In this document: positions 2,269 through 22,680 of the stretch, piece after piece
Layout of the letters: each line of letters opens with the position of its first letter
Numbering within the stretch: the stretch's first letter is position 1
Assembly: GCA_043228905.1 (NCBI GenBank)
Contig: JBHGNT010000013.1
Span: 5,828,001-5,892,000 of the forward strand
DNA from: Azolla caroliniana
Taxonomy: Eukaryota > Plantae > Polypodiophyta
Direction of reading: 5' to 3'
DNA: 64,000 bases
Notes under the pieces: model-generated
The model's database searches: none
Seen by the model: the letters and a program-made list of their open reading frames with translations, nothing else
Told to the model about the DNA's origin: nothing
Program-made: the position numbers and the translations under genes

Positions 2269-2273
2269 TCTTT

Positions 2274-2291
2274 TGGTGAACCCGATGTGAA
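2274..2291 (+). other. Primer-binding site complementary to the tRNA-Trp(CCA) 3' end
   Basis: TGGTGAACCCGATGTGAA vs reverse complement of the plant tRNA-Trp end ...TTCACGTCGGGTTCA-CCA; one G:U-compatible change; 5 nt after the LTR. Confidence 0.8.
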
Positions 2292-2314
2292 GAGGCGGAA
2301 AAGGAAAAAAGGGG

Positions 2315-2680: not shown

Positions 2681-2899
2681 GCCACAACGCGGCCTGCGAG
2701 CGGCGGAGAAGAGAGAGCGGCGACCGACTACACACTACCGCCGGAAGAGAGCTCAATGCAAATGGGTTCGGAGAAGCTCGACATCAAAGCCTTGGTGCGG
2801 GAAGCGTACGAGATCGTAGAGGCACAAATCGAAGCCGAAGAAGGGCTTATTGCGGAGTCCGGCCCGAGCGGATCGGAGGATGAGGAGGCTGAAAGAGAA

Positions 2900-3960: not shown

Positions 3961-4200
3961 TTGTAGCGGACGGAGGCGAGATCCCTCGACACCAGGGCCG
4001 GAGACTTCGGCGGTTGTGCCCAAGTGCGGACATAAGACCGAAGAGATGGACAGTGGCCGTGAGGATGAGAGGCCCGGAGTGGGCACGTGCGAAAAGGCCG
4101 AACGAGAGGTCCGGAGTGGCATCAAGGAGCGAGTCGGGAACCGACCCGACCGAAAGATGAGCCGGTCGATAATCCGACCCGACCAGGAGGCGGAGTGGAA

Positions 4201-5636
4201 AAAGAGTGAAGCGGGGTCCGGTCAACCGGACCCAAACCGAAGAAGAACCGGCAAGGCCGGATTTGCTCGGACAAACATGTACCGGCCGGTTACGATTAGG
4301 AAAGGGAGCCGACCAAACCGGAACTCCATCGACCGAGACCGATCCGGGCGAAGGCTATGTCGGCATGATTGGAGGCCGAGGCATACGAGCCACAACACGC
4401 GGTGGGAGCCGGTGAGCGCAAGAAGGAGGCTAACCGGGCACGGTGATTACGGCTTGGCGGAAGACCGAGAGCAAGGGAAACCCTCCCCACCTATTCCTGA
4501 GACTTTGGCGGTTGCGGATCAACATAAGACCGAAGAGACGGCGGGTGGCGGCGAGGACTTGGAGACCAGAACGGACGAGGCTACCAGAACGGGTACCCGG
4601 TGCGTGAAGACGGTCGAGCACGACCCAGATGGCGAGCCGGACCCGGAAGGGGCTATGGCAACAAAGGACAAAGAGACCGACGCGGAGGTCAGGACTACGG
4701 CGGATGAAGGGCGTGACACGAAGCATGCATTACGGTCGGTGAAGGGCCCAAGAACGAGCATGCATCCGAGAGAGCGTCAACGAGTGATCGGAAACGGTGG
4801 ACCGATTGAGCCTTTGAGAGGCGAAGACTCGGTGGTGGACTGAGAGTGGGAGGAACCCTCCACACCTATCCGTGAGGCATCGGCGGCCGCGGATCGAAGG
4901 GAAACCGAAGAAACGGTGGGTGGCGGTGAGGAGTTGGAGACGGACGCGGAGGTCGGGTCTACGGCGGAAGCGCGACACGAGACACATGCAATACGGCTGG
5001 TGGAGGGCCAAGACACAAGCATGCATACGGCGGATGGGCGACAACAATTGACCGACGATGACGGTCGGGTCAAGCCTTCGAGAGGCAAGCGCGGGATGAA
5101 TGACGGCTCGGCGAAACACCAAGACCGAAGACATGGGCCGAGCGCGATCGGCATGAGCGGAGAGTCGTGTCTTGAGAACCGAAGAAAGTGCGCGGAGAGC
5201 AACGGGCTGCGCGCCAGGAAGAGGAAGTGCGGCTTCCCGGAGGGCATGCAAGGCCAAGCGGGCCAAGAGGGCGCAAGTCGAGGCGAAGCGGTAACGGGAG
5301 CCTTGAGGGACACCGACACAGAGGTCGGGATGACAGTACGCTCTACCGCGAGAGAGCAAGGCGAACGACGGGGAAAGCCTATGGAAGGCAAGCGCCGAGC
5401 GGAGAGAGTCGGCACGCCGAGGTGTGCGGCACGCAAAGGGCAGAATCTAACATGCGACCGGGAGCGCATCCGGAGGATATACGAGGCGGACAAAGGAAGA
5501 GCAACCGGGTCGGCGACGGCGTTCAGGAGGATCGAACGGGGAGGAAAGCACGGGCATCGGATACGGAGGATCGGATGTAGTCGGTGGTGCAAGGATCCAC
5601 GGTGGACGTGGCAGATCGGGTGGAGGCAACGGCTCG
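4201..5636 (+). repeat. Left copy of the 1436-bp direct duplication flanking the Penelope-like element
   Basis: Colinear with 14921..15601 + 20958..21712 (681+755=1436 bp); about 24 substitutions by manual count; this copy has the empty GCATC site where copia C2 sits in the right copy. Confidence 0.95.
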
Positions 5637-6402
5637 GCGAGAACGGCCACGGAACTTAGAGATAAAACAAGAGCACAAAATAAATATGAAAACCCTAATA
5701 TTAGAGATATTGACATTACAATGTATGAAGGGGAAGAAGAAAATGATAATGAAATGTTTTATGACAGTCCCTCGTACATTGCTCCCTTAGAAGCCAAGAT
5801 AAATAATACTAAAAATTCTGTCCCCCATACTATTAACCTAAATAAAAATTCTAATCACATACCCACACCCAACCCCAAAAAGAATCTAAACTTTACCCTA
5901 AACCCTAATCTAGAACCTAAGTCTAACCCAAACACTAAACTCTAATTCCAAAAATACCACTAACCCTTTTCCTAACTCTCACCCTAACCCAAACCACCGC
6001 TCCAATAATAACTCCAAACAAGCGCAACGTCCTCGTCATCGAGCATCTAACCTCCTTTTCACCTGCAACACCGCAACTAATGAGGTTAAACAAGCATTTA
6101 AACCTTATCCCAACCATGGAGGGCCTCAAGTTCTTTTTCATAACCCAAACTTTGCCAATAATGAACTGCACCATTCTCGCTCACCACAAGCTTTCGCAAC
6201 GATAGGCCTTGGTCATCTCCCCGCTCATATAAGTCCTCCGACTCCTAACACCGTCCCCGAGCTCCATCCACCATACTATCGTCAACCGCACCTGCCAAAC
6301 ATTACAAGACAACAATTTCAACACTCTGTTACGAATCAAAGCCGCCAACAAAACTTCCCGCCGTCGCCACCGCCCCTTTTCCGTCGTACACATGGTACAC
6401 CC

Positions 6403-9400
6403 TGTTGGGATTTCGGTCCCTTTCGGATGGGATGGTCGGATATCGGAGATGAATGCCGACAAGCCCGGTTTCGGTTTCGGATCCGGATGACGAAGACCCC
6501 GGCTTCGGTGCCGGATGACGAATGTACCCGAAGAGCGATCCGGATGCAGGGACATATCCGTGAATATGTTCGCTACGAGCCCCCTGAGGCTATAGTTGTA
6601 AATAGCCCAAAGTCATATAAGTATAAATATGACTTAGGGCAAACAGTTTTTCTGTTGCTTCTCATTTTTCTGTTTTTCCACTTTAGAGGAGTGAAGAGAG
6701 AGCAGCCGAGAGAGAGAGAGAAAGAGAGAGAGCGCGAGAGAGAAAGAGGTAGACGCCTCTGTGTATTTCCGCCGCCTGTGGCGAGGACAGCGAGCTCAAG
6801 GTCGTCGCCTTGGAGCTCGTCATTGTATACTTCTCTGTATAGTGTTGTTTGGAGTCTTGTACTCCCGTGGTTTTTCCCCGTTTAGGGTTTTCCACGTTAA
6901 TCCTTGTGTACTCGCGTTTCTTCGTTTTGTTTCTACGTGTGTTTCCTATTTTCTGCTCCATTGATCCGCGATTAATCGGTTGTGGCCGAGATAAGAAGCC
7001 GGATAGAAGGGCCTATTCCTTACAAACTGGTATCAGAGCGACTGTTGCAGAAAATGGAAGGCGGCGGCAGCGGGCAGCCGATGATGATGGTGCTGAATGC
7101 ACAGAATTACGCCGACTGGAAGATCAAGATGGAGGATCTTCTGATTGTTCGGGACCTGTACGAACCGATTGACAGGTCGGAAATACCGAAGGGGGTACTT
7201 GAGTCGGAGTGGAAGCTCCTGAACCGGAAAGCCGTAGCGACGATCCGACAATATGTCGACGTAAGCGTCCTGCAACATGTGGCGAACGACACCAACGCAT
7301 ACGAGATGTGGAAGAAGCTGTCTGGCCTCTATGAGAGGAAGAATGCGTTGAACCGGACCTCCCTGATGAGGAAGATTGTGAATCTCAAGTATCGGGACGG
7401 CGAGAGTATGGTGGAACACGTAAGCACGTTCATGGGATTCGTGAATCAGCTTGCGGCGATCAAGTTCCCGCTGGAGGATGCAATGCAAGCCATCATCCTG
7501 ATGTGTACATTGCCGGACAGCTGGGAGAACCTGGTGGTGACTCTCAGCACCTCCTGCACCGAAGATAACTTGTCCCTACAAACGGTAAAGACAAGTATTC
7601 TGAATGAAGAAGCGCGTCGGAGAGATAAGGAACCGGCCTCCGACCCGAAGATGCTGTTTACCGAATCGGATCGGGGAAGACAGTGGAACCGGAGTCCGCA
7701 AAGACGGGAGAAGTCGGGGACCCGGTCGCAGTCAAGAGGAAGGCCAACATGCTTCCACTGTGGGAAGCCGGGGCACTTCCGAAAGAATTGTCGGCATTAC
7801 CGAAAAGACAATGGAACCGACAACACCGATTCGAAGAAGTCACCGGAGAGAAACGGTGCATACCGGGGAGCCACGGACCGGAATGGTTCGGATCGGCGAG
7901 GACAGGACCGGAAAGGAACAACGGCACTCGCGGCAAGTGAGGAAGAAATCATGCTCATCACCGAAGAAGGTGAGCTAAACGTTGCCGGCGATGAGACGAC
8001 CTGGGTGGTCGATTCCGGAGCATCGTTCCACCTGACCCCGGAGAGAAGATACTTCTCATCCTACACAGCCGGCGAGCATGGCTGTGTTCGGATGGGAAAT
8101 GAAGGTACGTGCCGGATTGCCGGCATAGGAGACGTGTGGTTGACAACCCCGACCGGATGCAAAATGCTGCTGAAAGATGTCCGACACGTTCCGGAGGTCC
8201 GATTGAACCTGATTTCGGCCGGGAGGCTAGATGATGAAGGCTACACGGGTAGCATCCGGAACGGTGTCATGAAGTTCAGCAAGGGGAGCTTGATAGTGGT
8301 TCGGGCCCGGAAGGTCAACACACTGTACCTGATGAATGCCCGGTTATGTCCGGAAGAGCTGAATGTGGCAGCCGACACTGCCGGTGAGCTGTGGCACAAA
8401 AGACTGTGCCACATGAGTGAGAAGGGGATGAAGAGGCTTGCAGAAGACAACCTCATCCCAGTGAAGTACGTGCACCTGGAGAAGTGCACCGACTGCCTGG
8501 CCGGTAAGCAAAACCGAACCTCCTTCCACTCAAGGCCACCGACGAGACGTAGCGCACCATTGGAGTTGGTGCACACTGATGTGTGTCAGGTAGAGACGAA
8601 GTCACATGGCGGAGCCCAGTACTTCGTAACATTCATCGATGATCATAGCCGAAAACTGTGGACGGCACCGATGAAGACAAAGGACCAAGTGTTGTCCGTC
8701 TTCAAAGAACTCCATGCGAGAGTGGAAAGAGAATCCGGCAAGAAGCTGAAAGCGATACGAGCGGATAACGGAGGGGAATACCGAGGGCAGTTCCAGGAGT
8801 ACTGTCGCTCGAAGGGAATCCGACTCGAGTTTACTGTGCCGAAGACGCCGGAACTGAACGGGCTGGCCGAGAGGATGAACCGGACCATAATGGAGCGGGT
8901 CCGGAGTATGCTGGCGCATGCGAAATTACCCAAGGGGTTTTGGGCTGAGGCAATGTCGACGGCGACATACGTGATAAACAGATCACCCTCAGTACCTTTG
9001 GACGGAGACACGCCGCAGAAAGTGTGGACTGGTAAGGAAGTGTCCTACCGGCATCTGAAGGTGTTCGGGTGTCTCGCATACGTGCATGTGGCAAAGGACC
9101 GGAGAGGAAAGCTAGATCCGAAGACCCGGCCATGCATATTCCTCGGTTACGGCGACGACGAGTTCGGCTACCGAGTATGGGACCCGGTCGACAAGAAGAT
9201 ATTCCGGAGTCGTGATATCATCTTCATGGAGAACAAGACGCTCGCCGACTGGGAGTCGGAGAAGAAGATGAAGAGCTCCAAGTCGACCGGTGAGGATCAA
9301 CTCTACGAGGAGCAGTCCCGACCGGCAAGGGACCGGTTAGCACTCGAGGATCCGGCCGAAGACAGTGAAGACACAGAACCGGCCGAAGAAGATGAAAATG

Positions 9401-11758
9401 ATACCGGAACCGGCCCCGATCCCGAAATGGTCTCGGATGAAGAAGAATCGGAAGAACCGGTTACCGAAGCTCCGGAACGGAGATATCCTCTAAGAGAGAG
9501 AAGGGCCCCCCCGGAGATTTCCGGAACCAGAGCACGTGCTGCTAACCGACGAGGGGGAGCCGGAGAGCTTTGAAGAAGCAAAGCATGACACCCAGAGCCG
9601 CAGGTGGTTGAGTGCCATGCAGGACGAGATGGATTCCCTGCATGAGAACCACACATATGAACTTGTGGAGTTGCCGAAGGGAAAGCGGGCACTTCGAAAC
9701 AAGTGGGTGTTCAAGCTGAAACCGGGAGATGCCGGAAACCCCCCGAGATACAAAGCCAGGATCGTGGTGAAGGGGTTTCAGCAAAAGAAGGGCGTCGACT
9801 TCGACGAGATATTTGCCCCGGTAGTGAAGATGACCTCCATCCGGACGGTGCTGAGCATAGCGGCAAGCATGGACCTCGAGGTAGAACAGATGGACGTGAA
9901 GACGGCATTCCTTCACGGCGACCTCGATGAAGAGATCTACATGCAGCAACCGGAAGGATTCGAGAAGGAAGGGAAGGAGCACCTGGTATGCCGGTTGAAG
10001 AAGAGCCTTTACGGACTGAAGCAGGCTCCCCGGCAATGGTACCGGAAGTTCGACTCCTTCATGACCGACGAAGGGTACCTCAAAACGCAGTCCGACCACT
10101 GCGTGTTTGTGAAGGAGTTCGAAGGAGGAGACTCTCTAATACTCCTCCTGTACGTGGACGACATGTTGATCGTCGGACGGGACCAGGTCAAGATACGGAT
10201 GCTGAAGAAGGCTCTTCACCGAACCTTCTCAATGAAGGACCTGGGTCCGGCGAGGCAAATACTAGGGATGCACATCATCCGGGACCGGAAGAAGAAGCAG
10301 TTGTGGCTGTCACAGGAGAAGTACGTGACAAAGGTGCTTCAACGGTTCAACATGTCGGAAGCAAGACCGGTCGGATCGACCCTCCCGGCAAACTGCAAGC
10401 TGTCCAGCAAGCAAAGTCCCAAGACAAAGGCTGAAAAGGAGGATATGATGAAAGTGCCGTATGCCTCAGCAGTCGGGAGCTTGATGTACGCCATGGTGTG
10501 TACGAGACCGGACATCGGATATGCAGTCGGAGTGGTGAGCCGGTACATGAGCAATCCCGGCAAAGAGCACTGGAACGCGGTCAAGTGGATACTCCGATAC
10601 CTGAAGGGCACGGCAAACGTGTGCCTCCGATTCGGCTCCGGTAAGCCCGAACTCGAAGGCTTTACTGATTCTGATATGTCGGCTGATGCAGATACCAGCC
10701 GGTCCACATCAGGGTATGTGATGACGTATGCAGGGGGAGCTGTTTCGTGGCAGTCGAGGCTGCAGAAGACGGTTGCGTTGTCAACCACGGAGGCGGAGTA
10801 CATGGCGGCTGTTGAAGCCGGCAAGGAAATAATATGGATGAAGGACTTCATTAGAGAGCTCGGTATCCGGCAAGAGGAGTACCGACTCTACTGCGACAGT
10901 CAGAGTGCCATCCACCTTGCGAAGAACGCAGCCTATCACTCCCGGACGAAGCACATCCAGCGAAGATATCACTGGATCCGGGAAAGGATAGAAGACAAGG
11001 AGTTCGTGCTGACGAAGATCCACACCGACGAGAACGGGTCGGATATGCTGACCAAGGTGCTCACACCCGACAAGCTGGAAGCATGCCGGAAGAGGATCGG
11101 ATTGGAAAGACATCCCATGCCGAAGTGAAGGGGGAGTTTGTTGGGATTTCGGTCCCTTTCGGATGGGATGGTCGGATATCGGAGATGAATGCCGACAAGC
11201 CCGGTTTCGGTTTCGGATCCGGATGACGAAGACCCCGGCTTCGGTGCCGGATGACGAATGTACCCGAAGAGCGATCCGGATGCAGGGACATATCCGTGAA
11301 TATGTTCGCTACGAGCCCCCTGAGGCTATAGTTGTAAATAGCCCAAAGTCATATAAGTATAAATATGACTTAGGGCAAACAGTTTTTCTGTTGCTTCTCA
11401 TTTTTCTGTTTTTCCACTTTAGAGGAGTGAAGAGAGCAGCCGAGAGAGAGAGAGAAAGAGAGAGAGCGCGAGAGAGAAAGAGGTAGACGCCTCTGTGTAT
11501 TTCCGCCGCCTGTGGCGAGGACAGCGAGCTCAAGGTCGTCGCCTTGGAGCTCGTCATTGTATACTTCTCTGTATAGTGTTGTTTGGAGTCTTGTACTCCC
11601 GTGGTTTTTCCCCGTTTAGGGTTTTCCACGTTAATCCTTGTGTACTCGCGTTTCTTCGTTTTGTTTCTACGTGTGTTTCCTATTTTCTGCTCCATTGATC
11701 CGCGATTAATCGGTTGTGGCCGAGATAAGAAGCCGGATAGAAGGGCCTATTCCTTACA
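6403..11758 (+). mobile_element. Ty1/copia element C1, very recent
   Basis: LTRs 6403..7024 and 11139..11758 differ only by one AG unit on manual comparison. TSD CACCC (6398-6402/11759-11763), Met-i PBS 7028-7040, PPT GAAGGGGGAG. Confidence 0.97.
7054..11128 (+). CDS. copia C1 gag-pol (Gag, CCHC, PR, IN, RT, RNase H) with a single +1 frameshift at 9506-9512
   Basis: CFHCGKPGHFRKNC, VVDSGAS, WHKRLCH..CTDC, DVC/DNGGE/E, YVDD, TDSD. A C7 run here is C6 in relatives D and E. Confidence 0.93.
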
Positions 11759-12488
11759 CACCCTACAATAATTGGACATCATAGAAACGTGATCCACTGC
11801 ACAATAACCAGCAACATGTCGTGGTTGATCGCGGCCTATTTCATCAATCGTTCCCCCCCCCTATTGTAAACGAGTATGGGACTGTGTTGGACAGCCATCT
11901 CGTGCACCCTTCCCCCTCCCTACATGGTGCGTTGTTTGGGACTGCGCAAGGCAGCCAACACACATTCGCGCCGCCCCTCCTTCCCACCCCTCATCCATGC
12001 TCACAACAGCCTCACCTCTCACGTTTTCAGAACCCTAATTACTCCCATTTCTCTGTTCCCTCCTCACATCCCCCTTTGTCTTCCTATGGAGGCAGCCTCT
12101 ATGAACAAATGCCTCCTCCCCTCCCCTCTCCCTCTCAATTATTTCCATATCTCATACATGCCCCTTCATTACTTCCCGATAATCTAACTCATGCCCCCCC
12201 CTATTTTAGCCCTAATTCACATACTACCCCTCCCCCTCCTTTATCTAATTTTCATTCGCCCCCCCCACATTTTTTTACCCCATTTGTTGAAACCCCCCCC
12301 TCTAACTCATACTCTACCCCTCCCTCGTATCTTAATAAACCTCCTTCTTATTATCCCCTCTCTAATATAAAAACCCCCTTCACCCACCACACCACCCCTC
12401 CCTCCTATCCTAATCATAAACATTATAGAAATACACCACACTCCACTAATCCTCCCCCTACCACACACCATAGGAACCCACCTTCTAG

Positions 12489-14468
12489 CCGACCAAAAAA
12501 CGACTAGCATGGCATGCTAAGCGTGTTAACAAACACTTTAGACACGCCGTGCATCCTTGTAGACGCCTATTTTATCTTCTTAATAGGACCACCTCCACCC
12601 CAGACACTTTTATGTGGCTAGGTAATACAAATACATCTTTCCCCTTCCGCCCACGCCATAAAAAATCCAATAGACTACGAAAAAAGTTTTGGAAACCACT
12701 TAGTGCTACCCTTCGAATAGAAAGTAAAATTCACAATTTATCTAAACACCCCCTTACAAATAATGAAACACAATTGCTAAGCTTAGGACTCAAATACATT
12801 CCACCATCCTCTCTACCTTCCACTAATACTATCATTAAAGAATTTGCTAGTTTAAGTAGATCTTTACGTTTAAAACATTTCTTTAGAGACATGGACTCAC
12901 CCCCCCTTAATCCATTTAAACTACCAAATCCTAACTGGAATCCACCATCTCAATATCCCCCTCTTGAAAATATTATTAAAAAACATGAAACCCTCCTTTT
13001 GTCTAAACTCCAACAACCTAAACCCAAACCCGTTAGGACACCATTTCACCTTCGCACAACCCTTAAGAGCCTTAGGAAAAACAACCAAATTATCGTTCTT
13101 CCGGCTGATAAGAACATGGGAGTATGTGTTCTAGACAAAGATACCTATTATGAAAAAGCTATAAATCACCTCTCGGATACCACCACCTATAGAAAAGTAA
13201 CCCATTTTCCATTAGAAGAACTCTTATACCGCCTAAATAGTATAGTGCAAAAAAATCTAGGGACACTTTCCTTTATCGAAGCTAATTACATACTCCATAA
13301 ACCTGTAAAGGGATATCAAGTATCTAATATTTACTTTCTCCCTAAACTCCATAAAACACCCATTAGCTTTAGACCCATCTGTTCTTATAATAACTCGATA
13401 TTCGAGCAAACCTCGAAATGGCTACATTTTCAACTATTACCCATCCTAGTACTCCAAAAACAATACCTAAAAGACGCACACTCACTCATCCAGAAACTAG
13501 AACAACTAACCTCCCCTCCTAACAGTTTCATCTTCTCTTTTGATGTAGAATCCCTTTATCCTAGCATCCCCCCTAAGTTAGGACTCGAAGCACTCCGCCA
13601 TATCATCTCTCCCCATTTTTCCTTAGCCAAGACCAATCTTATCTATACCCTTAGCGCTCTAACCCTAGAGTATCACTATCTAACCTTCGATAACCAAGTA
13701 TACCAACAAATCAAAGGAACGGCCATGGGTAGCAATTTCTCAGTTGTCTATGCATGCCTTTTCTTATCACACCTAGAAAACTCACAAACCACACCCCATC
13801 TCTTCTATTTTACTAGGTACATAGATGATGCATTCGGGGTTTGGACAGGTACGAAACCCCAACTCTTAGACTACCTCAGTTTCTATAGCCTTATGACCAA
13901 TAACTCTATTAAACTTACGATCCATACATCCCCCACTAGGCTCCCTTTCTTGGATATTTGGATCAATCTAGAGAACTCTAAGTTCTCTTTCAATTGTTTC
14001 CAAAAACCATTAAATTCCTATCAATATCTTCCCTTCTCCTCAGACCATCCTATACACGTCAAACAAAATTTTATTTCGAACGAATTAAAACGCTACCTAG
14101 TTAGAGAAAGCACACCTATAGGGTACCTAGAAATGAAAAAACGTTTCTTCCTTAGACTCATTAGCCGAGGTTACCCACCAAATTTCATCCTTAAAGCCTT
14201 TAATAAACATCCTTTCTCCCTTAGGAATACTCTCATCCATAAGCATAAAAACAAATCTTCCCTTACACCTACCATATTCAAGCTTAGGTACTCTAAAAAC
14301 TCCCCTAAATTAGGTATCCACTCGTTCTTAAAAGACTTACACATCGACCTTAGCCTAGATCCCCAACTATAAAACATTCCTAAGCCTTTCATATGTTGGA
14401 CCAAGTCCAAATCACTCTATTCTTATCTAGTCAAAACTAAATATATTAGATCCTCAAATCCCCATTAA
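12489..14468 (+). CDS. Penelope-like reverse transcriptase; premature TAA at 14370-14372; no endonuclease
   Basis: NLSKHPLT..LLSLGLKYIP, PADKNMG, LPKLHK..FRPI, FDVESLYPSIP, QIKGTAMGS, RYIDD, PFLDI, YLPFSSDHP. The PLE-like tail PFICWTKSKSLYSYLVK continues in frame after the stop and ends at 14468. Confidence 0.9.
12495..12552 (+). promoter_or_regulatory. Putative programmed -1 ribosomal frameshift signal (A AAA AAC + 5-nt spacer + stem-loop)
   Basis: Heptamer 12495-12501 is in the ORF1 frame just before its stop; the -1 frame is the RT frame. Hairpin 12507-12552: GCAUGGC/GCCGUGC, CUAAG/UUUAG, GUGUU/AACAC. Confidence 0.75.
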
Positions 14469-14694
14469 AACATCACACTTACTATTGCTATCATTCTACT
14501 AGAACTAAATATAATAGATCCTCAAATCATCCCTTACCATCAAACTCATTAAGCTATCCCTCTCTACATTCACTACCTCCCTAACTCCCAAATCCTCCTT
14601 TATACACATTCAAATCCCCTCTCATCCATCCCCACCACTCCCCTTCACTCTTCTTGCATCTTCCCCTATATAAGCCTCTCACATTTTTGTATAT

Positions 14695-14747
14695 GGTCTT
14701 TAACACTGATGAGCTCATATAGAGCAAAACATGTTTGCCAAAAGACC
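14695..14747 (+). ncRNA. Decayed minimal type I hammerhead ribozyme in the PLE 3' region
   Basis: GGTCTTT..CTGATGA-GCTC-ATATA-GAGC-[A]AAAC-AT-GT[T]..AAAGACC. Core GAAA>AAAA and GUC>GUU. TATATAA lies ~20 nt upstream. Confidence 0.7.
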
Positions 14748-15601
14748 TTTTCTTACATAAATTGAAATTTGAATTCTCTCTCTCTCTCTCTCTCTCTTCT
14801 CCTCCCCTACTACTCTCTTTTATACTATTCTTTAGTTACCATACTATTTACACTAACTATCCAACCGCCGAAGGTTATATGCTCGCACTCCTTGCTTAGG
14901 CCATACGGCCCACAAGTACTAAAGAGTGAAACGGGGTCCGGTCAACCGGGCCCAAACCGAAGAAGAACCGACAAGGCCGGATTTGCTCGGACAAACATGT
15001 ACCGGCCGGTTACGATTAGGAAAGGGAGCCGACCAAACCGGAACTCCATCGACCGAGACCGATCCGGGCGAAGGCTATGTCGGCATGATTGGAGGCCGAG
15101 GCGTACGAGCCACAACACGCGGTGGGAGCCGGTGAGCGCAAGAAGGAGGCTAACCGGGCACGGTGATTACGGCTTGGCGGAAGACCGAGAGCAAGGGAAA
15201 CCCTCCCCACCTATTCCTGAGACTTCGGCGGTAGCGGATCAACATAAGACCGAAGAGACGGCGGGTGGCGGTGAGGACTTGGAGACCAGAACGGACGAGG
15301 CTACCAGAACGGGTACCCGGTGCGTGAAGACGGTCGAGCACGGCCCAGATGGCGAGCCGGACTCGGAAAGGGCTACGGCAACAAAGGACAAAGAGACCGA
15401 CGCGGAGGTCAGGACTACGGCGGATGAAGGGCGTGACACGAAGCATGCATTACGGTCGGTGAAGGGCCCAAGAACGAGCATGCATCCGAGAGAGCGTCAA
15501 CGAGTGATCGGAAACGGTGGACCGATTGAGCCTTTGAGAGGCGAAGACTCGGTGGTGGACTGAGAGTGGGAGGAACCCTCCACACCTATCCGTGAGGCAT
15601 C

Positions 15602-18600
15602 TGTTGGAAGCAATGTCGTCTGTGCGGAAGATCTTGAAGCACTCGATTCCTGTTTATTCCCTGTGTATGACAGAATGTAGGTCGTTGCACAGAGAGAGAG
15701 AGAGAGAGAGAGACACAAAAGAGTTTCTTATTTCATAAAGCAACAATACAACAACCAACCTCACAAAGAGGTTACAAGGTCACTATATATAGTGACCGAC
15801 TTAGGGCAACTGCCCTTTATGCTAATTACATAAATGGCCAAAACGGGATGGTGTGAATACGTCCATTATACACAGGTATTCAACACTCCCCCGTAATGGG
15901 CGTATACATGGGTTATCTAAGGTTACAGGTATAGACTTAGGTTCTCGGACATATCAGCTTTGTTCGAGTCGGCAGGGTTCGAAGGCAGAAGACCGAACTG
16001 GTCGGGTCGGAACAGTTGAAGCCGATCATTAAGGAACTGATGTCGGTTGTCGGGAACCATCCTGCTCTGTGTCCGGCTCTAACCGGACTGGTTTGTCGTT
16101 ACGCCCATCTGATGCCGAAGAGACCGAAAACGGTCTGCCGAAAGACACTTGGTCATTCCATCTGCGACATTGTCGGTTGTGGATATTTTCTCTAGACCGA
16201 TTTTCCTTGAAATGACGCAGTCCCGAACGAAGTGATATCGAACATCGATATGTTTGGAGGCGTTGTGGTGAACCGGATTTTTCGACAAGGCAACAGCACC
16301 TTGACTGTCGCTGTAGACAACTGGAGCCGAGTCATGTTCGACTTGTCGAAACGTGTGCGCCAGCCGACCGAGCCACAAAGCTTCTTTTGCTGCGTCGGAC
16401 GCAGCTACATATTCTGCTTCGGTCGTTGAGGTCGCTGTGCACTCCTGAAGTTTCGACTTCCACGAGATTGCTCCATTGCCGAATTTGAAGCAGTATCCGG
16501 TTGTTGATTTCCGGCTGTCTATACAGCCGGCGAAGTCCGAGTCGGTGTAACCGACTACGCCTGAGGTTCGGTTCGGACCGAAAAGAATGCCGTGATCTTT
16601 TGTGCCAGCCAGATATCTGAACACATGCTTGACTGCGTTCCAATGCGATCGGCCAGGATTGTGCATAAATCTGCTAACGACTCCTACGGCATGAGAGATG
16701 TCAGGCCGTGTCGCGACCATCAGGTACATAAGGGAGCCGACTGCCGGTGCATACGGTACCGACTTCATATCTTCCCCCTCCGAACCGGATGTCGGGCAGT
16801 CTCGCTGAGAGAGCCGAAGATTCATAGGGAGTGGGGTTGAAGCAGATTTGGCTGATTGCATGTTGAAGCGTTCCAAGACACGTCCGATATAGTCGGTCTG
16901 AGACAAAAAAAGATGTCGTGTATCGCGATGCCGACTAATCTTCATGCCAAGGATGTGTCGTGCCGGACCGAGGTCCTTCATGGCAAACTTCAACCGCAGT
17001 TGCCGAACGAGATCGGCAAGTTCGCCCGCGTGGCGTCCAGAAATTAGCATGTCGTCCACGTAAATGATGAGGAAGATGGGTGATCCATCTTGAGCTGTGT
17101 TGGTGAAGAGACAATGGTCCTCATCGCTTTTGGAGAAGCCGATCGATTGGATGAAGTCGTCGAACTTCTTGTACCATTGTCGCGGTGCCTGTTTGAGGCC
17201 GTATAGACTCTTCCTGAGTCGGCAGACTAGATGTTCTTGGCCAGTTGCCACGAAGCCTTTTGGCTGCTCCATATAAATTTCCTCCTCGAGATCACCATGG
17301 AGGAAGGCTGTTTTGACATCTAGCTGAATCAGCTCCAAGTTGTCGGCTGCCACGACGCCGAGCAGAAAACGAAGGGTTGTCATTTTCACCACTGGTGAAA
17401 AAATCTCGTCGAAGTCGACGCCATATTCTTGTCGGAAGCCCTTCGCAACTAATCTGGCCTTGTACTTTGGGGTGGTCGAATCAGACGTCTCTTTTAGTCG
17501 ATAAACCCACTTGCAAGGAAGAGCACGTCGGTTCCTAGGTAATTCGACCAGATCCCAAGTCTTGTTTGCACGGATGGAGTGCATTTCCGACTCCATCGCC
17601 AGATGCCAGGTGGCCGAATCGACAGATGTCGATGCTTCTTCGTAAGACGTCGGTTCGCCGGCGTCGGTGAAGAAAATTCCAGGAGAATACCTCTCCGGAG
17701 GTTGCGACAGTCTCTCGGATCGTCGAGGTATGATTGGACTGGTCGCATCGGGTATCGAGGTCGGATGGTCCGAAACCGAATCATTCGGCTGTGCTGAGTC
17801 AGAGTTGTCTGAGTCGGTAGTATAAGGTTCAGCTACCCGTGAAGCTGACCGTGTGTTGAGAGCGGGGCCTTCTTGAAGGGTCGGCACATCGGAGAATGTT
17901 ACCCTTCGGACTTCGATCAGTTTTTCGACTGATGGATTCATAGCCGACTCGTTGAACACAACGTCCGAACTTCGAACGATTTGTCTGCGTTCGGGGTCCC
18001 AGAGTCGGTATCCCATTTCGCTGTCTGATCCATATCCAAGGAAAATGCATTTCCTGGACCGAGGTGCAAGTTTTCGGCGATCATCTTTCGGAATAAGGGC
18101 GTACGCCTCGCATCCGAAGATCCTCAGCTTGTCGTAATTCGGCTTGCTGCCGATCCATAGTTCCTGAGGAATTTGAAGTCCTAGAGGTCTACTTGGCGAC
18201 ATATTGATTATGTGTACTGCCGTGAGTAGAGCCTCTGCCCAGAAGCCATCCGACAGTCCGGAGTGTTGGAGCATGGAAACTATCCTTTCTTGGATTGTCC
18301 GATTCATTCGTTCTGCAACCCCGTTTTGCTCCGGACTGTGTGGTGCCGTAAATTCATGTCGGATGCCGCGTTGTCGGCAGAATTTGACGAATTCGTCGGA
18401 TTTGAACTCTCCCCCATTATCGGTCCGAAGGCATTTCAGCTTTCGGTCGGTTTGATTTTCTACCATAGCGAGCCAATCGGTGAAGATCGAGAAGACACGA
18501 TCTTTGGTGCGAATTGGATAAGCCCACACCTTTCGAGTCGAATCGTCAATAAAACTGACGAAGTAAGAGGCACCGCCTAGAGACTGATTCGGCATTGGGC

Positions 18601-20952
18601 CACAGACGTCCGAATGGACTAGATCGAGAGGTCTCGTTTCTTTTGGTGCTGATGTCGGGTGTGATGTGGCTACTTGTTTGCCATACTGGCAATGCTCGCA
18701 GAATTGATGGTCGGAGAAGGAGAGTTTGGGGATGTACCCGGCTCTGGATAGGTGCGTGATGCCGGCCTTGCTGAGGTGTCCTAATCTTCGGTGCCATAGT
18801 GATGACACAGGAATATCCACCAAAAACAGGTTACCCTCTCTGAGCGTAACATGTAGCGGATACAATGAGTGTATCTTAGGTCCTCTAGCAAGCAGGAGGT
18901 TCCCCCTGTGGAGTGTCCACCCTCCCGAAGAAAAACCGGCACGAATGCCGTCTTCATCTAGTTGTCCGACTGAGATCAATGGCCTTGAGAGCTCGGGTAC
19001 ATGTCGGACACTGTGGAGTACAAGTGTTGAGCCACCTGCAAGGTTGAGCTCTACTGTGCCGATTCCGATGATGTCGCAGTGTTGCGAGTTACCGACTCGA
19101 ACTGAGTCGGAGTGACGGATCGTATATTGCCGAAATTGGGATCGATGAGGAGTCACGTGAAACGACGCGCCCGAATCTAAGAGCCATGTGCTCGACTCTT
19201 CAGTCGTGAGTAGAACTTCTGATCCGACTGGATTTTCGATTGATAGTATATTCGGGTCGTCTGGTAGCACATCAGCTGAGAAGCTGACGTAGTTGACCTC
19301 CTCATGCCGGCCACTCTTCTTGTTGTTCTTGTTCTTGAGTGCGCGGCAGTCGGCTTTGATGTGTCCGGGTTTCTTGCAATAGTTGCAGGTTCGGTTATCC
19401 CGTGACTGGCTCCGTCTTCGCTGATTGTTCGGCGGTCGTGAGGAATCTCTTCCTCGTATGTTCGATCGGTCTGTCGAACCTTGTACTACGTAAGCGTCGT
19501 CCGTTGAGTCTTTGGCAAAAGACTTTCTCCGAGCTGCTTCGGTCAGGATTGCGCTCGTGACTTCGGAGTATTTAACAGCCGTGGTTGACGCGTTGCACAC
19601 AGTTGTGACGAAAGTTTCCCATGATGAGGGAAGGCTGCTCATGAGTATCATTGCTCTGAGCTCATCCTCGATTGCCGTCCCCTGTGACGAGATTTGGGAG
19701 CTTATGCTTTCGTACTCATTGAGGTGTGCTTGAACCGAATCGGATTCTTTCATCCGCAAGTTGTAGAGGCGCCGGATCAGAAACATCTTTGTTGCGGCGA
19801 CCTTCTTTTCGTAAGTGTCCGACAGCGTTTTCCACAGTTCGAATGCTGTCGTACACGATTGCACCGTAAAGTATACCGATTCCGATAGGTGCATCCGAAT
19901 CGTGGCGCGGACGATTCTGTCCAGCTTCTGCCACTCAATTGGTTTGTATCCTTCTGGAGGTTCTTCATTTTCGATGGGATCGATCTGCCCCTTGACTATG
20001 AGATAGTCCTGCATTTGTTCCTTCCAGAAGTTGAAGTTCGATCCATCGAACTTTCGTAGACTCATTTCTGACGAGCCGGATGTTGATGCCATCAAATTCG
20101 GTTTCAGTTGACGAAGCTCGGTTCGGAGTTGACTACGAACCTTGTTGGAGTGCAGCCGGTTGGCTCACCCGATATCGTTCTAGTCGGATTTGAACCCGAG
20201 TCGGTTCGGCTTCGGAACTTGCTCGAATTGACTCCGGTAACTTGAGGGACAGAACCGACTGGTCTTCCCGAATGTTGCCGAGTCGGAGTGAGCCCGGTTC
20301 GTTTCGGATATATATGCCGAATACCGATTATTAAAACCGATTATCTGAACCGATTTTGCTTCGGTTGACTGCAGCGACGAGAGAGACGGATCCGACTGAT
20401 CCTCCCGAATGTCGATCAGCCAGATGAAGCATGAATTTGGGTTGTTGTCAGGGTTGCACAAGGGGATTTCACCTCGAGCGGTTACGATCACGGGGAGCGG
20501 AGTACAACCTGCTGGCTTACTCCAAACAAAGATGATCTAACGCGATGAGATGCAAACCTGGTTTTTCTTCTTCTTCTCTCTTCTTCGAATGACGCAGGGA
20601 ACCGAATGCAGAGACGACGGCCGACAGCGGATTGAGGGACCGACTACTGTGCAGGCTCTGATACCAGATGTTGGAAGCAATGTCGTCTGTGCGGAAGATC
20701 TTGAAGCACTCGATTCTTGTTTATTCCCTGTGTATGACAGAATGTAGGTCGTTGCACAGAGAGAGAGAGAGAGAGAGAGACACAAAAGAGTTTCTTATTT
20801 CATAAAGCAACAATACAACAACCAACCTCACAAAGAGGTTACAAGGTCACTATATATAGTGACCGACTTAGGGCAACTGCCCTTTATGCTAATTACATAA
20901 ATGGCCAAAACGGGATGGTGTGAATACGTCCATTATACACAGGTATTCGACA
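15602..20952 (-). mobile_element. Ty1/copia element C2, structurally intact
   Basis: 284-bp LTRs 15602..15885 and 20669..20952 (2 differences). TSD GCATC (15597-15601/20953-20957), Met-i PBS 20655-20666, PPT beside 15885. Confidence 0.97.
16079..20092 (-). CDS. Uninterrupted copia gag-pol polyprotein (~1337 aa)
   Basis: CNYCKKPGHIKADC, LLDSGAS, WHRRLGH..CEHC, HSDVCG/DNGGEF, YVDD, TDSD; no stops or frameshifts. Confidence 0.96.
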   Translation of the reverse strand: MASTSGSSEMSLRKFDGSNFNFWKEQMQDYLIVKGQIDPIENEEPPEGYKPIEWQKLDRIVRATIRMHLSESVYFTVQSCTTAFELWKTLSDTYEKKVAATKMFLIRRLYNLRMKESDSVQAHLNEYESISSQISSQGTAIEDELRAMILMSSLPSSWETFVTTVCNASTTAVKYSEVTSAILTEAARRKSFAKDSTDDAYVVQGSTDRSNIRGRDSSRPPNNQRRRSQSRDNRTCNYCKKPGHIKADCRALKNKNNKKSGRHEEVNYVSFSADVLPDDPNILSIENPVGSEVLLTTEESSTWLLDSGASFHVTPHRSQFRQYTIRHSDSVRVGNSQHCDIIGIGTVELNLAGGSTLVLHSVRHVPELSRPLISVGQLDEDGIRAGFSSGGWTLHRGNLLLARGPKIHSLYPLHVTLREGNLFLVDIPVSSLWHRRLGHLSKAGITHLSRAGYIPKLSFSDHQFCEHCQYGKQVATSHPTSAPKETRPLDLVHSDVCGPMPNQSLGGASYFVSFIDDSTRKVWAYPIRTKDRVFSIFTDWLAMVENQTDRKLKCLRTDNGGEFKSDEFVKFCRQRGIRHEFTAPHSPEQNGVAERMNRTIQERIVSMLQHSGLSDGFWAEALLTAVHIINMSPSRPLGLQIPQELWIGSKPNYDKLRIFGCEAYALIPKDDRRKLAPRSRKCIFLGYGSDSEMGYRLWDPERRQIVRSSDVVFNESAMNPSVEKLIEVRRVTFSDVPTLQEGPALNTRSASRVAEPYTTDSDNSDSAQPNDSVSDHPTSIPDATSPIIPRRSERLSQPPERYSPGIFFTDAGEPTSYEEASTSVDSATWHLAMESEMHSIRANKTWDLVELPRNRRALPCKWVYRLKETSDSTTPKYKARLVAKGFRQEYGVDFDEIFSPVVKMTTLRFLLGVVAADNLELIQLDVKTAFLHGDLEEEIYMEQPKGFVATGQEHLVCRLRKSLYGLKQAPRQWYKKFDDFIQSIGFSKSDEDHCLFTNTAQDGSPIFLIIYVDDMLISGRHAGELADLVRQLRLKFAMKDLGPARHILGMKISRHRDTRHLFLSQTDYIGRVLERFNMQSAKSASTPLPMNLRLSQRDCPTSGSEGEDMKSVPYAPAVGSLMYLMVATRPDISHAVGVVSRFMHNPGRSHWNAVKHVFRYLAGTKDHGILFGPNRTSGVVGYTDSDFAGCIDSRKSTTGYCFKFGNGAISWKSKLQECTATSTTEAEYVAASDAAKEALWLGRLAHTFRQVEHDSAPVVYSDSQGAVALSKNPVHHNASKHIDVRYHFVRDCVISRKIGLEKISTTDNVADGMTKCLSADRFRSLRHQMGVTTNQSG

Positions 20953-21956
20953 GCATCGGCGGCCGCGGATCGAAGGGAAACCGAAGAAACGGTGGGTGGC
21001 GGTGAGGAGTTGGAGACGGACGCGGAGGTCGGGTCTACGGCGGAAGCGCGACACGAGACACATGCAATACGGCTGGTGGAGGGCCAAGACACAAGCATGC
21101 ATACGACGGATGGGCGACAACAATTGACCGACGATGACGGTCGGGTCAAGCCTTCGAGAGGCAAGCGCGGGATGAACGACGGCTCGGCGAAACACCAAGA
21201 CCGAAGACATGGGCCGAGCGCGATCGGCATGAGCGGAGAGTCGTGTCTTGAGAACCGAAGAAAGTGCGCGGAGAGCAACGGGCTGCGCGCCGGGAAGAGG
21301 AAGCGCGGCTTCCCGGAGGGCATGCAAGGCCAAGCGGTCCAAGAGGGCGCAAGTCGAGGCGAAGCGGTAACGGGAGCCTTGAGGGACACCGACACAGAGG
21401 TCGGGATGACAGTACGCTCTACCGCGAGAGAGCAAGGCGAACGACGGGGAAAGCCTATGGAAGGCAAGCGCCGAGCGGAGAGAGTCGGCATGCCGAGGTG
21501 TGCGGCATGCAAAGGGTAGAATCTAACATGCGACCGGGAGCGCATCCGGAGGATATACGAGGCGGACAAAGGAAGAGCAACCGGGTCGGCGACGGCGTTC
21601 AGGAGGATCGAACGGGGAGGAAATCACGGGCATCGGATACGTCGGATCGGATGTAGTCGGTGGTGCAAGGATCCACGGTGGACATGGCGGATCGGGTGGA
21701 GGCAACGGCTCGTTGAACATCGTCGAGTGTGGCGGATCGGATGGCGCCGACGGTTCGAGACCATTCGGAGAGGATGGTGGACCGGAAGGCGGCGGCGGTT
21801 CGTGTGGAGGGGGTGGTCTTGCTCGAAGTGGAGGACAAAACCGGGCGGGCCCATGAGGGCGCTAAGGACTCGGCCGGTCGTCGTGGCCGAAAATCTCGTG
21901 TTCTCTCCCCTATGTTTTGGCACATACCGGTGGATGTGCGGTTAGGTGGGGGCGGA

Positions 21957-22676
21957 TTTTGTGAAGATTTTTGTCCACGAGCGGAAACCCGAGCAACGAG
22001 AGCCAAAGAGCGACGTGCAACGTTGCACGCGTACATAATTTATTTGTAATAATAATAGGGGAAAAGGGTATGGTGCTAGAAATGCCCCATAAGATCCCTA
22101 AGGTATAAAGGCGATGTGGTCTTGTGCGCACATCCACGCGAGAGAGAGAGAGAGGCACTATGCAGTACATAGGTGCCTAGTTGTTTGTGAGGAGGTGGGA
22201 GTAAAGGGGCCATCAATCTCACCCTCCCCAAATCAAGGCAAATACCCCCTTTGAATGAAAGGGGATATTTTAGTCTCGTTTTTGTAAACGGTCTTCCCTC
22301 CTTGTGCTATAAAAGGAGAGGGAAGGCACCATTGTGAGGGTTGCCCATTTTGAGTGTGCGAGGTATACCACAGAGGTCGAGCGTTAGGGTTAGGGTTAGG
22401 GTTTCTTGATCTTTATCTTCATCTTCGTCGGTTAGGGTTTCGAGTAGCCGTTTAGTGCGGCCTATGTGGCCACCATTTTGTAATCGTTCATTTCGTTTTA
22501 ATATATCTTGTTGATCATTTTGTCTCCATCTTCCTCTTGTTCGATCTAATCTCTTGTTGATTCTTCTTCTTCCTGAGCAAAGCTTCCATTCCGTGTCTGA
22601 TTCCTTCTCCTCTACTCCTTAGTCCAAGACCCCCGTGGTCCCGCCCTTCTCCACGCACGCGCGTAGCAACGCGACA
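21957..22676 (+). repeat. 3' LTR of element G (first bases TTTT instead of TGTC)
   Basis: Direct repeat of 1549..2268; preceded by PPT AGGTGGGGGCGGA. Confidence 0.93.
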
Positions 22677-22680
22677 ACGT

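Follow-up and report, generated by a model that had tools for sequence, protein, structure and literature searches.

Penelope-like elements (PLEs) that lack an endonuclease (EN-minus) are thought to be mostly restricted to chromosome ends. How those of plants find 3'-OH ends and insert internally is a stated open question (PMC8557442). The 64-kb stretch of Azolla caroliniana DNA analysed here (the window) contains an apparently endonuclease-less PLE, P, nested inside a long terminal repeat (LTR) retrotransposon, G, and raises the question of how the element reached this position. At this locus, the 3' end of the element looks intact, its 5' end is truncated, a short microhomology is present, and a target that is otherwise single-copy is duplicated on a kilobase scale. 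Being clean, internal, and readable at its junctions, the insertion provides a concrete, testable model for how EN-minus PLEs insert internally.

The host retrotransposon and its duplicated segment

The interior of G consists of region X, the first copy of a segment D (D1), P, the second copy of the segment (D2), and region Y, in this order (Table 1). The two halves of G belong to one insertion, because the ACGT target-site duplications (TSDs) on its two sides match and its LTRs are 97.9% identical. The divergence of the LTRs is 2.1%. No Pfam domain was detected in region X, which is collinear with the G relatives L009–L011 and has composition and internal repeats in common with D. When public assemblies were searched for this G subfamily and for the junctions found here, the best G-ORF match had 82% identity over 12% of the query.

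Table 1 Features of the P locus (positions in the window)
Feature	Position	Strand	Description
G, LTR retrotransposon	1549-22676	+	716-bp LTRs, TSD ACGT, without pol
G 5' LTR	1549..2268	+	1553-2268 matches 21961-22676, 97.9% over 716 bp; TSD ACGT at 1545-1548
G internal region X	2269..4200	+	Purine-rich, repetitive
D1, first copy of duplicated G segment	4201..5636	+	Self-BLAST and repeat search
PLE P, whole insert between D copies	5637-14920	+	One PLE copy, split by Copia A
P left segment	5637..6402	+	Junction filler, ORF1 N-domain remnant, telomere-like tract, start of ORF1 C-part
Copia A, later insertion within P	6403..11758	+	622-bp LTRs; TSD CACCC at 6398-6402 and 11759-11763
P right segment	11764..14920	+	Remaining ORF1, RT ORF, 3' UTR; alignment to L001 runs on across excised Copia A
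P RT ORF	12612..14372	+	Frame open from 12489; ATG 12612 matches P0001 start
Hammerhead ribozyme relic, HH9-type	14692..14756	+	3' UTR; core CGAAAC changed to CAAAAC
Conserved 3'-terminal motif (CGCACTCCTTG and hairpin GGCCATACGGCC) and P|D2 junction	14884..14925	+	
D2, left part	14921..15601	+	Self-BLAST
Copia B, later insertion within D2	15602..20952	-	284-bp LTRs 99.3% identical; TSD GCATC
D2, right part	20953..21712	+	First 5 nt are the second Copia B TSD copy
G region Y with polypurine tract (to 21960), then 3' LTR	21713..22676	+	ACGT TSD at 22677-22680

Self-BLAST of the window matches positions 4201–4881 to 14921–15601 with 98.4% identity, and positions 4877–5636 to 20953–21712 with 98.3% identity. 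The two blocks overlap by five base pairs, GCATC, which are the TSD of the nested Copia B. After the excision of Copia B together with one copy of its TSD, D1 and D2 are each exactly 1436 bp long and differ by 24 substitutions and no indels, which corresponds to a divergence of 1.67%. Copia B contains an intact ORF for a 1338-residue-long polyprotein, and the sole difference between the LTRs of Copia A is a 2-bp indel. The only repeats reported by Tandem Repeats Finder are two dinucleotide microsatellites, both within the LTRs of Copia A.

Four PLE-free copies of G (L009 twice, L010, and L011) were available for comparison; these are 77–85% relatives from other assemblies and do not represent an allelic empty site. 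All four contain a single D between X and Y, with the X|D boundary contiguous in L010 and L011 and the D|Y boundary contiguous in L009 and L010. The direct repeats flanking P thus correspond to single-copy host sequence in relatives of the family, as distinct from an allelic empty site. Because the PLE-free relatives hold one contiguous D, the segment is genuine G sequence that is duplicated only at this locus, and not a pseudo-LTR of the PLE. Since D is single-copy in these relatives, the 1436-bp duplication was made together with the insertion of P. The ratio of the D1/D2 divergence to that of the G LTRs is 0.80 (95% CI 0.42–1.55), so that the two are statistically indistinguishable, and a Bayes factor of 1.8 favours the simultaneity of the duplication and G. 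Therefore, P may have arrived together with G.

Identity and ends of the inserted element

Judged from its sequence, P is a true PLE, because it encodes a reverse transcriptase (RT) with DKN and YIDD motifs (PADKN and YIDD in frame 12489–14369), carries a relic of a hammerhead ribozyme, and has relatives with pseudo-LTRs or tandem arrays. Further marks of PLEs were observed across the family: 5' truncation in P and L019, a pseudo-LTR in L020, circular assembly in L004–L006, and tandem RT genes in Cryptomeria. A local Pfam search with the RT of P gave a weak RVT_1 match only, and a sequence search of the PDB found no match for the RT and, for ORF1, only low-complexity ones of the NANP type. For the N-terminal domain of ORF1, AF2 modelling from a four-sequence alignment gave three long helices with a pLDDT of 42, which is too poor for a fold search. 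The hammerhead relic was matched by Rfam with an E-value of 0.013 and 21 bits, below the gathering score, as was the corresponding region of L001 (4560–4624, E 0.011); the window has no matches at Rfam gathering thresholds, and the hammerhead shows only at E-value thresholds. An intact CUGAUGAG...CGAAAC core is present at the same place in 15 contigs of relatives (L001–L008, L012–L015, L017, and L020), with TGAAAC as the core in L013.

The relatives of the RT at 25–32% identity include PLE proteins bearing a C-terminal GIY-YIG domain, according to precomputed Pfam domains. No GIY-YIG match was obtained with Pfam in any ORF of P up to E ≤ 5, or in the full-length ORF1 (L005, L016, L017, and L001) and RTs of the relatives at E ≤ 1; the GIY-YIG domain of the positive control P0051 was detected at 2e-6. 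Neither a CxC motif in the RT frame nor an N-terminal GIY-YIG, features of the Chlamys, Naiad, and PLE-X groups, was found. In an RT tree calculated with FastTree, whose deep branches are indicative only, the window RT belongs to a GIY-YIG-free clade with proteins from Selaginella, Ginkgo, Cryptomeria, and Closterium, and all ten GIY-YIG proteins are on the other side of a branch with 98% support; the tree is without labelled Coprina or Athena references, and the nearest named proteins in it are uncharacterised. The clade of P appears to be endonuclease-less, with no nuclease detectable by sequence methods.

With Copia A removed, P aligns to the ENA contig L001 in a single 3.8-kb HSP with 89% identity. 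The frame that is open at position 5637 is the homologue of L001 ORF1, and P begins at approximately position 877–882 of L001. The 5' end of P is short of approximately 780 bp, and the truncation is located inside ORF1. A second copy from the family, L019, is truncated at another position of ORF1. The D1|P junction contains 3–5 nucleotides of filler (GCGAG). The linker of ORF1 in P includes a degenerate (CCCTAA)-like tract at approximately 5845–5995; the (CCCTAA)n blocks inside the ORF1 of relatives are perfect, and the tract of P is only degenerate.

At the P|D2 junction, the sequence AAAGA (14921–14925) is common to the PLE end and the target, which gives a microhomology of 4–5 nucleotides (AAGA/AAAGA); the chance of at least 4 nucleotides is approximately 0.016. 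The right end of P is within a zone of approximately 25 nucleotides, from the conserved 3'-UTR hairpin to the ATG of ORF1, in which unit ends join in all relatives, and it coincides with the point where the 3' UTR of the relatives meets ORF1. No telomeric repeats are present at the 5636/5637 or 14920/14921 junctions. A second family copy with the 3' terminus of P beside a different flank was not found among the relatives, and the 64-kb window does not contain another PLE copy that could be a donor.

The contig L020 contains a full-length unit that adjoins a LINE and is preceded only by a pseudo-LTR (pLTR) of approximately 320 nucleotides, which supports the unit order pLTR-ORF1-RT-3'UTR. A telomeric tract as the unit end of the family was also considered, based on the termination of L002 and L003 in the (CCCTAA)n tract and on the Coprina literature; L001 and L016 stop at a (CT)n run. 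This arrangement seems less likely than pLTR-ORF1-RT-3'UTR, because in L005, L016, L017, and L020 the (CCCTAA)n tract is read through by ORF1 in one and the same phase, because L020 is full-length, and because two copies are truncated in the N-terminal domain of ORF1. Contigs L004–L006 assemble as circles, RT genes of Cryptomeria are in tandem 4.33 kb apart (known from gene positions only), and direct repeats of 1.95 kb surround the ORFs of the Selaginella relative L018.

The original prediction had described an endonuclease-less PLE, truncated at its 5' end with ORF1 open at the junction, without GIY-YIG beside the RT or telomeric repeats at the junctions, and followed by an equally long recurrence of 4201..5636. 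The alignment to L001, the Pfam scans, the junction sequences, and the excision of Copia B agree with this description, and the RT phylogeny that it called for places the element in a GIY-YIG-free clade. It had also named findings that would speak against it, namely a tandem D in PLE-free copies of G, GIY-YIG in full-length PLE copies, and two separate G insertions; the G relatives, the ORF1 and RT scans, and the matching TSDs and LTRs of G point the other way. The splitting of D2 and P by Copia elements, the internal (CCCTAA)-like tract, and the hammerhead relic are additional to that description.

Possible routes of insertion

P may well have been inserted by target-primed reverse transcription that needed no endonuclease: a 3' end already present in the DNA would have served as primer, and a distant break in the second strand would have resulted in a long TSD. 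This explanation is the best one, though tentative. The PLE would have been inserted after, or as, G integrated. An existing 3'-OH in the bottom strand of G, at the present position 14921 (equivalent to 4201), would have served as the primer, and the terminal bases of the PLE RNA (...ACUnAAGA) would have annealed to the complementary TCTTT at its end. Reverse transcription would then have begun at the 3' end of the RNA and broken off, by a stop or dissociation of the RT, approximately 780 nucleotides before the 5' end. Because the element is without a nuclease for a nearby top-strand cut, the primer for the second strand would have been a top-strand 3' end located 1436 bp downstream (after 5636), and the filler bases would have been added as synthesis began. 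D would have been duplicated when the two long single strands were filled in. Copia A and Copia B inserted afterwards. The topology of the event is that of an ordinary target-site duplication, merely a very long one.

P displays hallmarks of target-primed reverse transcription in its 5' truncation and in the position of its right end in the unit-end zone. The insert was probably made from RNA by an RT and not by the copying of DNA; the primer could have been a nick or a fork end, and the strand events presumably occurred in the order given above. The unwinding of 1.4 kb between two nicks would need help from replication or repair. Two observations also count against this route: the D1/D2 divergence does not differ measurably from that of the G LTRs, and other copies of the family have different ends, in the (CCCTAA)n tract (L002 and L003) or at a (CT)n run (L001 and L016). 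The evidence is from a single locus, from which the original prediction had likewise read priming at a break or a collapsed fork. Its statement that 1.4 kb is far beyond a staggered-cut TSD was overstated, as L1 TSDs of up to 5.3 kb are documented, and in NER-deficient cells their median is 1.5 kb (PMC5223499). A kilobase-scale TSD at this locus is not unprecedented, because L1 forms such TSDs with a distant second nick. The AAGA motif occurs 42 times on the plus strand of G and five times on the minus strand, and microhomology priming would therefore favour the same-sense orientation of P and G.

The same orientation is also the pattern predicted by LTR-mediated capture in the virus-like particle of G, and in this respect it counts against target-primed reverse transcription, all the more as the second PLE copy, L019, adjoins G-like sequence in the same orientation. 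Such capture, which is unlikely but a serious alternative, would have produced a chimeric cDNA that integrated as one G element. At 4201, the minus-strand cDNA growing on G RNA would have jumped to a PLE RNA packaged in the same particle, entering it at its 3' end; after copying the PLE RNA to 5637–5642, the cDNA would have moved back to the second G RNA 1436 nucleotides out of register, recopying D. Such capture is an established mechanism in eukaryotes at large, and its junctions show microsimilarity or a small number of de novo bases (PMC5131818). It demands the same orientation of the insert and the LTR element, as is seen here. It predicts that the D1/D2 divergence equals the LTR divergence, with which the values are compatible, and both LTRs of G and its clean ACGT TSD are present. 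However, in documented cases the captured RNA replaces a part of the LTR element and is not flanked by its duplication (PMC5131818). In place of a replaced interior with microsimilarity at both switches, the locus has a duplicated interior, filler at the 5' junction, and microhomology at the 3' junction. The probability of a random acceptor in the 3'-terminal zone of the PLE is below 1%, barring an end-to-end jump from a broken donor RNA, and the orientation and the association with G can also be explained by the eightfold strand asymmetry of AAGA or by the abundance of G. If the chimera arose in the virus-like particle of G, one retroelement was captured and carried by another.

A DNA-level event, either a replication-based template switch (FoSTeS/MMBIR) or unequal sister-chromatid repair, is improbable. 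After 5636 the nascent strand would have departed from G, taken up PLE sequence, either 3.9 kb copied from a genomic array or a fragment of PLE cDNA, and returned to G at 4201; the outcome would be a tandem duplication whose junction holds an insert. This gives the observed topology, and a short microhomology at one junction with filler at the other is in line with it; tandem arrays of relatives (the Cryptomeria RT genes and the circular L004–L006) are possible donors. However, the right end of P coincides with that expected of a unit, on the left P shows the usual 5' truncation, and the 64-kb window is without a PLE donor. Templated insertions of approximately 4 kb are unusual for replication-template-switch events, which also counts against this route. 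Very improbable, and largely refuted, are the readings of D as a PLE pseudo-LTR, of a native D-D tandem in the G family, and of an assembly artefact. PLEs typically bear pseudo-LTRs, and L018 has its 1.95-kb repeats; however, a pseudo-LTR is ruled out by the absence of D from the 15 PLE contigs examined and its single occurrence in PLE-free G copies, where D lies once between X and Y, contrary to a native tandem. D1 and D2 are distinct genomic copies, which speaks against an artefact, because they differ at 24 sites and the Copia element with its own TSD is in D2 only.

Following the preferred explanation by target-primed reverse transcription, it is possible, though doubtful, that endonuclease-less PLEs of the plant lineage can insert in chromosome interiors by priming on whatever 3' end is exposed and shows some bases of complementarity to the terminus of their RNA, and that they leave TSDs that are variable and often kilobases long, because they are unable to make a second cut. 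These elements may prefer purine-rich, nick-prone sequence such as that of the G family. If they prime on any 3' end, this would explain the genome-wide spread of EN-minus PLEs and make PLEs a source of small segmental duplications. If long TSDs are general in the family of P, they would mark priming without an endonuclease and add a new source of kilobase-scale duplication.

Comparison with known systems

Compared with the published descriptions of the EN-deficient Coprina and Athena elements (Gladyshev & Arkhipova 2007; PMC8557442, PMC13159263), P resembles them in its RT with DKN and a thumb but without GIY-YIG, in a separate upstream ORF1 that is predicted to be helical, and in a hammerhead motif, located in the 3' UTR or the pseudo-LTR. 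The relatives of P further resemble Coprina and Athena in their reverse-complement telomere-type repeats, which are (CCCTAA)n in L002–L007, L016, L017, and L020 but (CCCTAAA)n in L018 of Selaginella, and in the head-to-tail arrays that they form. By contrast, Coprina and Athena end in telomeric repeats, whereas P is inside a retrotransposon and has none at its junctions. The degenerate telomere-like tract of P is not terminal but within the linker of ORF1, and host sequence duplicated over 1.4 kb flanks the element. In the 64-kb window, the chromosome-end location with telomeric junctions that is expected of EN-minus PLEs was not found, and P is nested in an LTR retrotransposon.

The EN-minus PLE-X families of Selaginella and Chara, which are related to Chlamys, insert inside chromosomes, in 28S rDNA and, in Chara, genome-wide (PMC8557442). 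Both they and P are PLEs of the plant lineage in which an endonuclease has not been identified and which insert internally; however, PLE-X proteins have a CxC motif and an N-terminal extension (PMC8557442), and the window RT is without CxC.

Long-TSD insertions of L1 resemble P in that a 5'-truncated element is located between kilobase-scale direct duplications of the target (PMC5223499). The long TSDs of L1 are attributed to a break in the second strand at a great distance from where priming occurred; at pre-existing ends, microhomology is used (PMC5223499). L1 belongs to a different RT class, that of LINEs with an APE endonuclease, and its endonuclease-independent events are usually without TSDs and often delete the target (PMC5223499), from which P differs. 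The chimeras formed by LTR retroposition (Tan et al. 2016, PMC5131818), such as Bs1 of maize, share with P an RNA-derived insert in the same orientation within an LTR element, the retention of both LTRs, and switch points that show microsimilarity or filler. In these chimeras the internal sequence is replaced, whereas at this locus it is duplicated and the insert retains its own 3' terminus.

Nested elements and the duplicated host segment

Self-comparison of the window and reading of its junctions identify four nested elements at the locus (see table). The outermost, G, is an LTR retrotransposon with a polypurine tract ahead of its 3′ LTR and ACGT on either side. Its LTRs are ~716–720 bp long and 97.9% identical. 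The interior of G, of which X and Y are the parts outside the duplicated segment D, consists of degenerate internal repeats rich in GC and purine (A 0.25, G 0.38), and a Pfam scan found no domain in it; we take G to be a non-autonomous LTR element. Both G LTRs contain (TTAGGG)3 at equivalent positions (1976–1993 and 22384–22401).

Copia A and Copia B are later insertions, and before alignment each was excised together with one copy of its target-site duplication (TSD). D1 and D2 are then both exactly 1436 bp long, with 24 substitutions (1.67% of sites) and no indels, which confirms the predicted direct duplication around the Penelope-like element (PLE) copy P. Relatives of G were sought in ENA assemblies with a word search based on the G ORF that spans the X–D boundary. 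The three contigs retrieved, L009 (two G-like copies), L010, and L011, represent family relatives from other samples rather than an allelic empty site. They are collinear with G and 77–85% identical to it, and the alignments run unbroken across 4200/4201 in L010 and L011 and across 21712/21713 in L009 and L010. Each copy in these contigs has a single D and no PLE. A tandem D in PLE-free copies, which would have spoken against the original prediction, was thus not seen, and a native D–D tandem of the G family is ruled out. D was not found in any PLE contig and is single between X and Y in the G relatives, which rules out that it is a pseudo-LTR of the PLE. On the evidence of these sequences, D is host sequence duplicated only here.

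The LTRs of G differ at 15 of 716 sites (2.1%). The ratio of D to LTR divergence is 0.80 (95% CI 0.42–1.55), and duplication of D at the same time as G is favoured only 1.8-fold over any later time. LTR divergence is 0.7% in Copia B; Copia A has no substitutions between its LTRs and is therefore a very recent insertion.

Copia B retains an intact 1338-aa ORF. Copia elements are nested throughout the window: besides Copia A, they occupy 35896–41258 (−; a sister of Copia A, 94% identical), 41851–45382 (a relative, 86%), 46133–48703 (−), and 56891–61748. A diverged G-like element at 54953–56425 has X-like then D-like pieces in preserved order; after it, at 56891–57623, comes similarity to a Copia-like integrase. 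The ORF at 29865–30929, which strongly matches DUF7869 (E 1e-48) and may be a transposase-related gene, sits in an AT-rich stretch (24–34 kb, 34–41% GC); the retrotransposons, by contrast, are GC-rich.

Features of the nested locus and telomere-type repeat tracts of PLE relatives
Feature	Sequence	Position	Strand	Remarks
G, LTR retrotransposon, outermost	window	1549–22676	+	self-comparison, junction reads
X, G interior	window	2269–4200
D1	window	4201–5636
P	window	5637–14920
D2	window	14921–21712
Y, G interior	window	21713–21960
Copia A, in P	window	6403–11758	+	TSD CACCC; full gag-pol Pfam architecture
Copia B, in D2	window	15602–20952	−	TSD GCATC; full gag-pol Pfam architecture
RT open frame, P	window	12489–14369	+	627 codons; ATG at 12612
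Hammerhead (HH9-type) motif, P 3′ UTR	window	14692–14756		core mutated
ORF1 linker, telomere-type repeat tract	window	~5845–5995
ORF1 linker, telomere-type repeat tract	L005	1128–1337
ORF1 linker, telomere-type repeat tract	L016	1090–1143
ORF1 linker, telomere-type repeat tract	L017	4156–4341
ORF1 linker, telomere-type repeat tract	L020	8083–8136
ORF1 linker, telomere-type repeat tract	L018	6502–6629

Identity and unit structure of the Penelope-like element

That P belongs to the PLEs is well supported. Its RT has the motifs PADKN and YIDD. Assemblies in ENA and Logan contain close relatives of ~620 aa that reach 93% identity, and more distant ones occur among Cryptomeria, Selaginella, Ginkgo, and Closterium proteins (33–43%); the RT also matches ~620–810-aa proteins with a C-terminal GIY-YIG domain at ~25–32% identity. 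A hammerhead occurs at the equivalent place in 15 relative contigs. Pfam detected neither GIY-YIG nor another nuclease in any ORF of P, and no nuclease in the full-length ORF1 (819, 733, and 825+ aa) or RTs of relatives, whereas the same scan picked up GIY-YIG in P0051, the positive control. In a FastTree phylogeny of 69 RTs, that of P falls within a 44-row clade free of GIY-YIG members, and a branch with 98% support sets apart 10/10 GIY-YIG proteins. The absence of GIY-YIG, noted in the original prediction, is supported by both scan and tree. For the N-domain of ORF1, AlphaFold predicts only helices, at low confidence, with no hint of a nuclease, which such a model cannot exclude. The sequences support assignment of P to the endonuclease-minus (EN-minus) kind as regards nuclease absence; the telomeric location of that kind was not found at P.

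In the relatives, a 3′ UTR holding the hammerhead, (CT)n, conserved CGCACTCCTTG, and a hairpin is followed after ~25 nt by the ORF1 ATG. ORF1, one continuous open frame in L005, L016, L017, and L020, comprises a conserved N-domain, a linker, and a C-domain. Repeats of the (CCCTAA)n type code for the linker as Pro-Asn; L005, L016, and L017 share one reading phase, and L005 has 12-nt spacers. In the window copy and L001 the tract is degenerate, and in the Selaginella relative L018 it is replaced by (CCCTAAA)n. The tract may serve both as coding sequence and as a site where telomeric overhangs anneal.

In L020, a full-length unit, the sole upstream PLE sequence is a ~320-nt pseudo-LTR (pLTR) adjoining a LINE. 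L019, 98.8% identical to L001, is truncated at L001 position 372, and P begins inside ORF1 at L001 position ~877–882. L004–L006 are circular in assembly (end identity 55–119 nt, unit ~4.95 kb), and in Cryptomeria three RT genes lie on one contig at a spacing of 4.33 kb; in both cases these are arrays joined head to tail or terminal repeats that have collapsed. Together with the layout of the relatives, these observations favour the unit order pLTR-ORF1-RT-3′UTR. On this order, P is 5′-truncated by ~780 bp, as its truncation had been predicted, and its right end coincides with the unit 3′ end or lies no more than a few bases from it. Other copies end elsewhere: L002 and L003 terminate within the (CCCTAA)n tract beside two different flanks, and PLE homology in L001 and L016 stops at the (CT)n run. 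These ends, which may reflect priming at alternative sites or insertions that came later, leave the unit 3′ end without an independent fix.

In L018 (GL377752.1), 1.95-kb direct repeats (4671–6627 and 12121–14071, 98% identical) surround ORF1 and RT, and a hammerhead (4603–4628) and a TTAGGG-like run lie immediately upstream of the first; the repeats may be pseudo-LTRs or a long host duplication as in the window. The L016 copy is without the hammerhead region. Its flank, with a SUEL-lectin-domain gene (4629–4988, −) 390 bp beyond the RT stop, is among the few that contain a host gene.

Junctions and possible routes to the duplication

At the 3′ junction, P ends in GGCCATACGGCCCACAAGTACT and is followed by AAAGAGTG. 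At the corresponding place L001 reads ACTCAAGA, then ORF1, and G relatives read GGAA(G/A)AAGAG, so that 4–5 nt (AAGA/AAAGA) are common to the PLE end and the target; the probability of at least 4 shared bases by chance is ~0.016. At the 5′ junction, GGCAACGGCTCG is separated from AACGGCCACGG by GCGAG, a filler with 3–5 bases that match neither D nor P. Window 5625–5650 has two further features: the filler and the end of D together make a short palindrome (CTCG-G-CGAG), and AACGGC occurs twice, 14 nt apart, shortly before the D end and at the P start. Each may be fortuitous or may have been left by template switching.

The arrangement X-D-P-D-Y is obtainable in one event by three processes. Endonuclease-independent target-primed reverse transcription is the reading we prefer, tentatively and at slightly less than an even chance. 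Reverse transcription of PLE RNA would be primed at 4201 by a 3′ end that already existed in the bottom strand, the second strand would be primed by a top-strand end after 5636, and the result would have ordinary TSD topology. In L1, a remote second nick yields kilobase TSDs that reach 5.3 kb and have a median of 1.5 kb in NER-deficient cells (PMC5223499); lacking a nuclease of its own, an element has to depend on such unrelated breaks. The TSD topology, 5′ truncation, near-terminal 3′ end, and terminal microhomology count for this route. The predicted priming by a pre-existing 3′ end is the preferred reading, with two rivals beside it. Inside a G virus-like particle, the growing minus strand could have switched from its G RNA template to PLE RNA and then returned to G RNA at a shifted register, and LTR-mediated retroposition by template switching is an established route (PMC5131818). 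In favour of this capture, P and G have the same orientation, the ages of D and the G LTRs are compatible, and L019, a second PLE copy, has a G-family-like upstream flank in the same orientation. However, the orientation argument is weak, because AAGA is 8 times commoner on the + strand of G than on the − strand, and published chimeras replace the interior of the LTR element, whereas here D is duplicated; we consider such capture rather unlikely. Replication-based template switching or unequal repair with PLE DNA copied, a route at the DNA level, is improbable, and artefact, mixed, or unforeseen routes take the remaining probability.

Positions 1–1063 of L019 resemble X then D, collinearly and in patches (73–84%), matched to the PLE orientation, and at the 5′ junction of this copy 19 nt of PLE sequence are duplicated. 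The position of L019 beside G-like sequence suggests either that G is a preferred target or that it has captured PLEs repeatedly.

Comparison with known elements

PLE-X elements have a CxC motif, whereas none is present in the RT of P. EN-minus PLEs are largely telomeric, whereas P lies within G. Internal insertion has already been reported for the EN-minus PLE-X, its mechanism being unknown (PMC8557442), and scattered copies have been mentioned for Coprina (PMC13159263). Kilobase TSDs have a precedent in L1; here, the 1.4-kb duplication flanks an EN-minus PLE. The locus merits a genome-wide census. What is new, in a claim that stands on one locus, is the combination of an EN-minus PLE whose internal junctions can be read with 1.4 kb of duplicated target that is demonstrably single-copy elsewhere.
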